A program made the position numbers and the translations under genes. Positions 37,961 to 40,900 of a stretch of DNA of 64,000 nucleotides are shown here, in pieces. The notes under the pieces were generated by a model, which was not told where the DNA came from, did no database searches, and worked only from the letters and a program-made list of their open reading frames with translations. Source of the stretch: Octopus sinensis (taxonomy: Eukaryota); assembly GCF_006345805.1 (NCBI RefSeq), contig NC_043005.1:89962001-90026000 (forward strand), in the 5' to 3' direction. The number at the start of each line of letters is the position of its first letter. Within the stretch, counting starts at the first letter, position 1.

Positions 37961-40900
37961 GTAAGTTTATAATAATGATTTCTTCGTATTATTATTTATT
38001 CCAGGTGGGTGGTTCAAATAATGGTGCTTCAAACCAAAAATTACTTCAGACATTTTTTCTTTTGTTGTTTGGGTTAAAAACCTGTCTTACACCCCACCAA
38101 CACTACTATCACCATGGGTTTACTATACCTGACAACTTTACCCTTGATGTTATCGATCTTTTGAGCTCATCCCTGCATACTCTCTGCCCATAATTCATGG
38201 AAGAGTCATGAGGGCAGAGTCCTCCGGTACCCCACCCATAGGGTCCTATCAGAAGCAAATTTCTAATTCTCTTTCCCAGACACCTAGTTATAGACTTGAA
38301 GAGGGATGCTCAAGGAGATTCCCCTATAATTAGAGCCCTCTCTTTTGTCTCCCTTTAAAATAACCCCTTCAGACATCAACAAATAAAATACTAAGGATAT
38401 AGTGTCATTGATTTAATGAAGGATACACTCATCCTTCATTCCGGAATTCTTGATTTTTATTTCTCTATCTTTTATTTGTTTCAATCGTTGGACTTTCAAC
38501 CTTCTGGGGTCAACTACTGAGATTTAAGGCTTTCAACAAGCCCCAGCCCCTAATCCCCAAATGACTGTGCCTTTTGTTAGAATCGATTATTATTTGGTTT
38601 GTGGATTCGCAGAATTCTTAAGGAACGGGACAAAATAATTTGTGGCATTTAGTTACAGTTGTTTACATTCCGAGTTCAAACGCCATCAAAGTCACCTTTG
38701 CCTTTCATCCTTTATGGGGACAATAGAACGAAATACCTGTAAAGTCCAGTTAAGGATCAGTCAGGTTTGTCTCGAGCCAACCGGTTCATTTGGCAGGGAC
38801 ATAGCCCAGCTCTCAATGACTAAAAATACAAACCTCCCCCTGGATGGATTACCAGCCCATCACAGGGATAATCTCTCTCACCAATTTATTACCGGTACTT
38901 ATTTTCAGCTGAGTAAACTGGAGTAACACGAAAGGAAGCATTTTACACCAAAAACACAATGTGATGACTGGTCTGGAATTTGAAACCATGACGTTGCAGT
39001 TACGAGTGCAACACATTAACCATTAGGCTAAACGTCTTCCCCAATAGCCTTTGGTGTCCCTAAGGTGGTGAGCTGGGCAGAATGATTTGTGGCATTTCGT
39101 CCGTCTTTATGTTCTGAAATGAAATTCCACAAAGCTTGGCTTTGACTTTCTTCCCCTTTTCGGGAAGTACACAAGAGTAATGAGCGTAGTCTGAGTGAAG
39201 AGGCCTACTCTAAACATATGTCTGTAAGCATGAGAAGAGCTGGGGAAACAAGGCACTGGCCCTTGGTGGGAGAAATCATTGAGGTCTGGCGGAGCAAACC
39301 TTCATATTCTTTTTGTCTTTTATCTTTTACATGTTTTAATCATTAGACTGTGGCCATGCTGGAGCACTGCCTTGAAGAAACTTTAGTCAATCAAATCTAT
39401 CTCAGCACTTATTTTTTTCTTTTGAAGTTTGGGCGTTATTCTATCGGTAACTTTTGCCGAACCACTAAGTTACGGGAACACAGACGCGCCAACGGTTGTC
39501 AAGCATTGGTGGGGCACAAGCACAAAGACACATACAAAGGGGATTACTGAATTATCAATAGGACTTTTTGAAATTGGCTACAATGTAACGAACTCAGTTG
39601 TCCTTTTATATGTTGCTATCATTGTGTCTTGTTGTGAAGCATCCTGATGAGGGGAGTGTCTGTCTCATTAAGAATATGAAATTTATATCATATTATTGGA
39701 CACGTCTCCGAAACGGCCCGTCGATGGAACATTATCTTTGTGTATTAGTATGTCATGTTAACGTTGTATAATTTCAAATTTTCCACCGGACTCTGTGTAG
39801 AAACTTGTGAATATTTATTACCTTCTAACTTATCGTGTGAATTAATAATTATTGTGTAAATTATTAATTTGCATCTATCTTTCAGTTAATCTAAATTAAT
39901 TATTACTTAACCAGCCTCTCACACCGTCTCCGATGAAGGGATATAATTAATAAATATCCTGGAAACAGCTGTAAGACCTTCTATCTATAAATGTTCTAAT
40001 ATCTACACAGCCTTGGTTTTTTATTTCATTACGCAAGAAATTCTTATATCCACACGCTGACATATGACCAACGTTGTACACCTTATTGGCAAAATCACCG
40101 AACCTGGATCTTAACTACGATCTGTCTATAGAACTTAGCCAGCATTACCTGACATTTAGCTCTCAATGACACCATTACTTCTTATAACCTCCTATATATA
40201 TAAAAATTAGAGAAGAACCACCTTTTATCAATTCAACGATGAAATAACAATGATATAATTAAATTATACCATATAGAAAAAATAATAATAATTTATATAC
40301 ATATTTTACATATTGTGAAATTTGATTTAGCATTACTAAATTGAATTTTTCAAAATTGAAGTTTGGAATAATATTCCCTATTATTATTATATACACACAC
40401 ACACACACACACACACACACACACACATATATATATATATATATATATATATATATATATATATATATATATATATATATATATATATATGAAGATATTG
40501 TGCTCCGGTCATATAAATTTAATATTTACTTTCTATTTACTGAGTATTAATTGAAACAGCTGTAACGGATAATGGTGCGCAGGATGATGAGATGAAGTAT
40601 CAACAGGGCGCCGACAAAAATTTTAATGCTCTTTTTTTATTTCCTCTGCCAAACTGGACGAAAAGGTTTTCATGAAATATTATACGCCACTTATAATTCA
40701 TAATTAGTGTCAATATTTTATCGTCGGAAATGGCCTAAAATAAAATATAAGACTCGGTGCAGTATACACAAATCTGATTCATGTGCATTTTTGTGGGGCC
40801 CATAGTGAGCGTCTGAAATGTTTTAGTCAACAACAATTCGAGGAGCCTGATTAATGTTTGTTGCAAATTTGGAGGAAAGCGACTGGATACTCTTCACGTT

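Follow-up and report, generated by a model that had tools for sequence, protein, structure and literature searches.

A sequence-intact hammerhead in an SLC22-like intron of Octopus sinensis, a probable relic of a Hydra-clade Penelope-like retrotransposon

The 64,000-nucleotide stretch of the Octopus sinensis genome considered here (contig NC_043005.1, positions 89,962,001 to 90,026,000; "the window," in whose coordinates all positions are given, on the + strand unless marked otherwise) carries a hammerhead ribozyme motif in the first intron of an SLC22-like transporter gene. The motif is, in all probability, the hammerhead of the pseudo-long-terminal-repeat (pseudo-LTR) region that lies downstream of the open reading frame (ORF) in a Hydra-clade Penelope-like element (PLE), a retrotransposon of the octopod genome, and the copy in the window a dead relic of that element. 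A first-pass annotation of this DNA had considered the motif for its possible effect on the gene in which it lies; the motif is not specific to that gene, since the genome holds at least 45 copies, in decay, of the retrotransposon region that contains it.

Read on the + strand, the motif runs UGUGAAG-CAUC / CUGAUGA / 59-nt helix II / GAAA / CGGCCCGU / C^ / GAUG-GAACAU, and judged by its sequence it is a genuine, intact type-I hammerhead. The 5′ strand of helix I (39634..39643) is made up of an outer GUG (G39634-G39636), a GAA loop (A39637-G39639) and an inner CAUC (C39640-C39643); it meets a 3′ strand (39723..39732) of GAUG, a GAA loop and CAU, which gives 4 bp, a symmetric 3x3 loop (GAA/GAA) and 3 bp, as had been described, with the inner 4 bp covarying between the element families introduced below. 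The catalytic core opens with CUGAUGA (C3-A9; 39644..39650), whose CUGANGA is invariant in 15/15 hammerheads compared, and continues in GAAA (G12 A13 A14 A15.1; 39710..39713), likewise invariant between families. U16.1 at 39721 completes the core with an A15.1-U16.1 pair, and the G10.1-C11.1 and C15.2-G16.2 pairs are also present; every type-I core position (C3 U4 G5 A6 N7 G8 A9, G12 A13 A14, A15.1-U16.1, H17) can be read directly from the + strand, in agreement with the earlier statement that all conserved core nucleotides are intact. From its location relative to the core, C17 at 39722 is the base 3′ of which self-cleavage is predicted; H17 is A in sister families versus C in the window motif.

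Helix II occupies 59 nt (39651..39709). Its base is 5 bp long and is followed, past a 1-nt bulge (G39704), by 7 bp and then, beyond an internal loop, by an AU hairpin of 7 bp; the first-pass annotation had described it accurately as unusually long and in two parts. Taken alone it folds more stably than shuffled sequences (z = -2.5), and its basal 5 bp covary between families. The same architecture recurs in a sister family, that of locus L058 (z = -5.7), with which the window family has the basal 5 bp and the 3′-strand bulge in common. Helix III, ACGGCCCGU (39713..39721), was identified from the sequence and from a cross-family table; it is near-palindromic with one central mismatch, and forms 3 bp closing a GCC loop in the monomer and 8 bp around a central C-C mismatch in a homodimer, so that its description as very short and near-palindromic holds.

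The sequence surrounding the motif is repetitive. A stretch of 161 nt around it occurs in at least 45 copies in the 2.72-Gb assembly, at 77-96% identity and on many chromosomes. The fragment present in the window, defined by BLAST against 29 other genomic copies, spans 39532..39869 (+, 338 bp), and mutual mapping of the 29 loci gave a repeat unit of ~734 bp downstream of the ORF, of which the fragment covers positions ~18-338; the missing 3′ half was not found anywhere in the window. The copies begin at varied unit positions (8, 27, 36, 42, 47 ... 141) and share a common 3′ end, a combination of variable 5′ and constant 3′ ends which is the signature of aborted reverse transcription. Their 3′ ends adjoin (TA)n directly, or do so after 100-160 nt more, which again end in (TA)n; at L007 two copies stand tail-to-tail within one (TA)n tract, and at L011, L021, L022, L023 and L030 an inverted 5′ piece is joined head-to-head to the main copy. 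The family to which the window copy belongs therefore shows the (TA)n insertion, 5′ truncation and tandem or inverted copies that characterize the Hydra clade.

Two other repeat classes were considered and rejected. The inverted pairs suggested a DNA transposon with terminal inverted repeats; against this, the copies do not end in inverted repeats, they are truncated to differing extents at the 5′ side, and they are linked to an ORF for reverse transcriptase (RT) and endonuclease (EN); a short interspersed nuclear element was dismissed as the copies run on upstream into that ORF.

The parent element is seen most directly at L043 (which is L012 extended upstream) and L009, where the repeat unit is preceded by a decayed reading frame and the hammerhead lies ~540 nt past its stop. 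This frame contains ...VIWFAPPFS..., a CxCX5C linker (CNCRDPSKC in L043), a GIY-YIG match and CxxC..E..N..CxH; the suspected origin from a PLE is thereby supported, some of the family copies continuing into a Hydra-type ORF with GIY-YIG. By Pfam, the GIY-YIG domain scores 25.9 bits in L059, above the cut-off, and 17.2 bits in L043, and, out of ~15,000 unscored first-look candidates in the genome, the element's endonuclease matches >150 places that were scored. Longer open frames are found at L058 (701 aa) and L059, both with an upstream polymerase-like region (FIQFD..YY.SI, ITMGSSDSAQ, YRDD, FLDV, SNHP), and RT motifs (FxQFD..YY.SI, YRDD, FLDV) were recognized by eye in L059 and in the homologues P0001, P0006 and P0117. 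Full-length database homologues are ~700-800 aa long, lie mostly on ~2.5 kb contigs, have RW(K) and DKT motifs at their start and also carry YRDD, CxCX5C and GIY-YIG. The Hydra clade has been defined by short elements (under ~3 kb), RWK, DKT, CxCX5C, the absence of CCHH, CxxC/CxH, (TA)n targets and hammerheads (PMC8557442), and the octopus sequences and their homologues between them show these motifs: CxCX5C (CNCRKPKLC in L059), an EN without CCHH and with CxxC/CxH around a conserved E and N (RCGLCIME...NKF...CTHK), DKT rather than DKG (LSDKTGN/LADKTGN), and RWK (RLRWRVW/KIRWKTW).

The family could also be viewed as a non-LTR retrozyme, a short tandem repeat that is not autonomous, has a single hammerhead in each unit and spreads via circular RNA. 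Most copies do lack an ORF, and retrozymes are themselves thought to derive from PLE pseudo-LTRs. A retrozyme would consist of head-to-tail units of ~170-400 bp with a hammerhead in each; we found the copies to be single and dispersed through the genome, not in 170-400 bp tandem arrays, with one copy in the window, and truncated from the 5′ side at many points, as expected of aborted reverse transcription of a longer element. As several copies also extend upstream into the GIY-YIG ORF, we regard a retrozyme as improbable.

Hammerheads recur at the same place in related elements. The DNA downstream of diverged Hydra-type endonuclease genes (33-81% protein identity) was scanned with a simple descriptor, and sense-strand hammerheads were found downstream of the ORF stop at L058, L059, L060/L048, L065, L066, L070, L071, L072, L073 and L079, representing at least 4 further Hydra-type families in this genome; where the distance was measured (L058, L059), the hammerhead lies ~490-510 nt past the stop. 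All of these motifs keep the CUGANGA...GAAA...UH core unchanged; their helix II measures 50-68 nt and folds well (z -3.6 to -6.0), and their helix III is palindromic (AUGGCCAU, ACAAUUGU, ACGGUAUACCGU, ACGGCCCGU). In Argonauta hians (L081), the Hydra-type ORF is intact (774 aa) and has an identical hammerhead on either side, in direct orientation, at 1189-1302 and 5544-5657 of that locus and 4355 bp apart, as in pseudo-LTRs; here helix II measures 95 nt, and helix III reads ACUGCAGU. The middle of this helix II is rich in TA/TG and looks as though a microsatellite had expanded within loop 2. At L082, from the bryozoan Watersipora, the hammerhead follows the stop by 64 nt, a (TA)n lies 115 nt farther on, and helix II measures 17 nt.

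The comparison between families required some care with the alignment. MAFFT misaligned the full-length diverged hammerheads, and misplaced helix III when more species were added; we therefore chose a trimmed alignment from which the distal part of helix II had been removed, together with a hand-anchored table. In this alignment (A2) 95.5% of cells pair and 11/12 pairs have changed on both sides, whereas 0/500 shuffles reach the observed pairing and partners slid out of register pair in only 30-47%. With Argonauta and Watersipora included, the 15 hammerheads are 93.8% paired. Within the window family, core positions differ by 2.1% among copies versus 6.9% in the flank, and strictly intact hammerheads are retained in 11/22 copies. 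The low core variation, the number of intact copies and the recurrence across families together indicate that the hammerhead is an inherited and constrained part of this retrotransposon lineage.

The extended helix II had been put forward as a possible tertiary or regulatory module of the window motif. It is 50-95 nt in all octopod Hydra-clade PLE hammerheads found, and the distal AU/TA-rich sequence is unrelated among them; going by these comparisons, the long helix is a trait of the octopod branch and not of the window locus, and a tolerated, lineage-specific expansion would fit better than a conserved regulatory domain.

Several observations weigh against the assignment to a PLE hammerhead. 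The Rfam hammerhead models (RF00163, RF00008 and RF02275-RF02277) gave no match at the gathering score over the whole window, and none at E <= 10 when the search was confined to 561 nt or 116 nt around the motif; a check with Hammerhead_1 and HH9, proposed in the first-pass annotation, thus came back empty from cmscan even on the shortest segment, and membership among the hammerheads accordingly rests on our own descriptor and on covariation. The percentage paired in the covariation analysis is itself inflated, the sequences having been chosen by a descriptor that requires helices, although this does not explain their constant place and strand relative to the ORF. The window copy, truncated at both ends, has no ORF and neither of the element's termini, and with ORF and (TA)n end lacking, its PLE origin is assigned by homology to longer copies. 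Pfam RVT models detected no RT domain in the octopus ORFs, Pfam gave no match on four full-length homologues, and searching the PDB sequences with the presumed RT region gave chance matches only; the RT assignment therefore rests on the motifs recognized by eye and on the clade description in PMC8557442.

The silence of the Rfam models also bears on whether the motif might be a chance look-alike, in which core words and helices came together accidentally in an AT-rich repeat with no ribozyme history. The window holds 33 CUGANGA words on both strands together, and the full 103 nt of the motif are no more stably folded than shuffled sequence (z = 0.02), both of which would suit an accident. Our strict descriptor, which demands the core and perfect helices of I >= 4, II >= 5 and III >= 3 bp, finds the window motif and nothing in any of 300 dinucleotide shuffles of the window, and a loose descriptor finds 3 sites in the window versus 0.073 expected. 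The motif stands at the same post-ORF place in at least five diverged families and in two other species; its core does not vary, each of the three helices shows compensatory changes, and helix III is palindromic in nearly all hammerheads compared. An accidental origin is extremely unlikely. The Rfam miss probably reflects the long helix II: our own 42-position covariance model, built from the trimmed alignment without distal helix II, fails to bridge the motif and splits it as well. An Rfam scan of five related loci returned only microsatellite "miRNA" noise.

The host gene provides the local setting. Exon 1 of the SLC22-like paralogue, with the start codon and the first transmembrane segment, was placed at ~37818..37960 (+) by protein reading of the sequence, and the next exon that could be recognized from its similarity to the upstream paralogue lies at 59173-59409 (+), with 85% protein identity to that paralogue's exon. 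The motif does therefore lie on the sense strand of the first intron, ~1.7 kb past exon 1, as reported. The SLC22 paralogues at 1676-15800 and 55035-63550 (+) are collinear in exons and introns, 65-89% identical in translation, non-coding repeats included; this collinearity of exons, introns and repeats indicates that the pair arose by a tandem segmental duplication which copied transposon fragments already resident.

Whether the motif acts on its host transcript depends on what a single copy can do. In a nearest-neighbour model of the monomer, the hammerhead fold lies 2.6 kcal/mol above the minimum free energy and all three hammerhead helices are present together in ~5e-4 of the ensemble, while self-dimerization via the helix III region is favoured by ~ -12 kcal/mol. 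Hammerheads of PLEs that act as dimers, when two copies share a transcript, are marked by a short palindromic helix III; in vitro, no cleavage could be detected for single motifs, and the activity of dimers was low (PMC4209133). The earlier remark that such a stem is typical of dimer-acting PLE hammerheads agrees with this. The PLE hammerhead of Anolis needs the element's protein, is dispensable for insertion in vitro and leaves no RNA-seq read ends (PMC11167929). On the other side, some invertebrate hammerheads with helices of 2 bp and a tetraloop cleave well as monomers (PMC7229834), and since the 3-bp helix III with its triloop is not much weaker than those, monomer activity is possible. 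The short near-palindromic helix III and the modelled energies point to a weak, dimer-dependent ribozyme; in a lone copy the active fold should be rare and cutting slow, if it occurs. A descriptor search of the window found no second hammerhead with a compatible helix III, the two other motifs detected (described below) not being complementary.

The first-pass annotation had suggested that the motif could cut the SLC22 pre-mRNA during transcription and affect splicing or output. On this reading it would be an exapted intronic ribozyme, acting either singly or together with a partner RNA, in analogy to the conserved intronic hammerheads of amniotes. The sense orientation within intron 1 would suit such a role, dimers with other family transcripts are thermodynamically possible, and core and helices are fully intact in a copy that is ~6% diverged from the family consensus (Jukes-Cantor distance 0.061). 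Intactness is ordinary for a copy of this age, half of the sister copies (11/22) being equally intact, and the two differences from the consensus within the motif look neutral, one being a loop base (39664) and the other changing a G-C to a G-U pair (39697). The disfavoured monomer fold and the want of a compatible partner in the window speak against exaptation too, as does a preprint from 2026 reporting that animal retrozymes are depleted from introns (10.64898/2026.07.22.740005), which points to selection against active genic copies and not to co-option; cleavage internal to an intron, moreover, need not alter mRNA output. On our analysis exaptation appears highly improbable. An effect of the window copy on the host pre-mRNA is unlikely; the intronic copy is most likely inert or nearly so, its effect on the host transcript none or negligible.

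Taking the motif as the hammerhead of a Hydra-clade PLE, the following history may be proposed. In the element, the hammerhead lies ~500 nt past the RT/GIY-YIG ORF and before the 3′ end adjoining (TA)n; in tandem copies the ORF is flanked by two hammerheads. Going by work on PLEs, these two could pair through the palindromic helix III into a double hammerhead, which would trim multimeric or read-through transcripts of the element, possibly aided by the element's protein. The 338-bp piece would have entered intron 1 of the SLC22-like gene, or remained there as a leftover, in the sense direction roughly 15-20 million years ago (Jukes-Cantor distance as above, rate as in PMC13282606); that this dead copy keeps every core nucleotide and all helices would be due to chance.

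For the transporter gene these observations carry little importance, as its intron would hold a retrotransposon relic and not a regulatory ribozyme. They matter more for annotation: Rfam-based scans miss this class of PLE hammerhead, and a dedicated model is needed to count the ribozymes of cephalopods. The diverged families, with their invariant core, covarying helices, palindromic helix III and variable helix II, offer a natural series on the helix II length that a dimeric hammerhead tolerates. We put forward only tentatively, and consider it rather doubtful, that octopod Hydra-clade PLEs carry an undescribed hammerhead variant (helix II of 50-95 nt) and that a few sense intronic copies could nick pre-mRNAs given a partner transcript or the element's protein; if true, long-helix-II ribozymes of octopods would be systematically under-counted in cephalopod genomes, as covariance models miss them. 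In the literature searched, nothing linked hammerheads with octopus beyond one passing mention.

Other features of the window include two further hammerhead-like motifs. One, at 6087-6164 (+), is a second hammerhead in the same style. Its core words CUGAUGA and GAAA enclose a 59-nt helix II; its helix III is a perfect palindrome (ACGAUCGU), followed by A17, and helix I has 6 bp. This hammerhead is situated within the upstream SLC22 paralogue, and Hydra-type PLE protein fragments occur near ~5264 (+) and at 6856-6465 (-). The other, at 8751-8846 (-), is weaker: it has CUGAGGA, a helix II of 77 nt whose base is 9 bp long, ACAACUGU as helix III and a mismatched first pair in helix I, and no PLE ORF was found next to it. 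Further PLE remnants are located at 44214-44608 (+), 51220-51384 (-) and 61243-62343 (+); two of the three are canonical PLE endonuclease fragments (CxxC and GIY-YIG with internal cysteines), and the third comes from a Hydra-type ORF (PPFS motif, EN), downstream of which the descriptor found no intact hammerhead. A match to U2 small nuclear RNA at 46333-46515 (-) scores 96.5 bits against a gathering score of 46, and (TA)n-like sequence takes the place of its first ~35 positions; the match is probably to a U2 pseudogene that has been truncated, or else to a retroposon derived from U2.

Set beside known systems, the window motif resembles the amniote intronic hammerheads (Rfam HH9 and HH10) in being a sense-strand hammerhead within the intron of a gene that encodes a protein. 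HH9 and HH10 are single-copy, conserved between orthologues and active as monomers with stable helices; the window motif, by contrast, is a member of a decaying repeat family, has a minimal helix III and is matched by neither Rfam model, and its multi-copy nature argues against a conserved intronic hammerhead of this type. With the animal non-LTR retrozymes (PMC7229834) the window family shares a type-I hammerhead, low GC and a likely PLE origin, but retrozymes are short tandem units giving rise to circular RNAs, whereas the window copy is dispersed, truncated and single, and linked to an ORF-bearing element.

Closer at hand are the Rfam Hammerhead_1 (RF00163) hits in the same genome (L031-L042; for example GUACCUGAAGAGACCCAGAACGGGUCGAAACAUGUGUCGUAC), which agree with the window motif in their core, in having a palindromic helix III (here ACAUGU) and in the 4 bp of helix I, and which likewise are retrotransposon-borne and present in many copies. 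They differ in being ~42 nt long with a 5-bp helix II and scoring 33-48 bits, whereas the window motif is ~95 nt and goes unmatched, and in being carried by a different PLE lineage, whose EN has CxxC and C..C inside GIY-YIG. The canonical 42-nt motif of these loci reads GUAC CUGAAGA GACCC..GGGUC GAAA CAUGU GUC GUAC, and among the Rfam hits are some of 103-109 nt, L038 for instance, in which a canonical motif carries a large insertion in helix II.

The described PLE and Hydra-clade hammerheads (PMC8557442, PMC4209133) share with the window family the type-I topology, the canonical core and a short palindromic helix III that implies dimers, the untranslated or pseudo-LTR location in an element with a (here putative) RT and C-terminal GIY-YIG, and the (TA)n sites, 5′ truncation and inverted or tandem copies. 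Unlike those described, the octopod elements have their hammerhead ~500 nt past the stop and ~530-600 nt before the 3′ end, and the described helix II of 4-8 bp with a small loop compares with 50-95 nt in octopods and 17 nt in the bryozoan relative. Hammerheads in PLEs, those of the Hydra clade included, are already known, and the expanded octopod helix II is the one feature that may be new.

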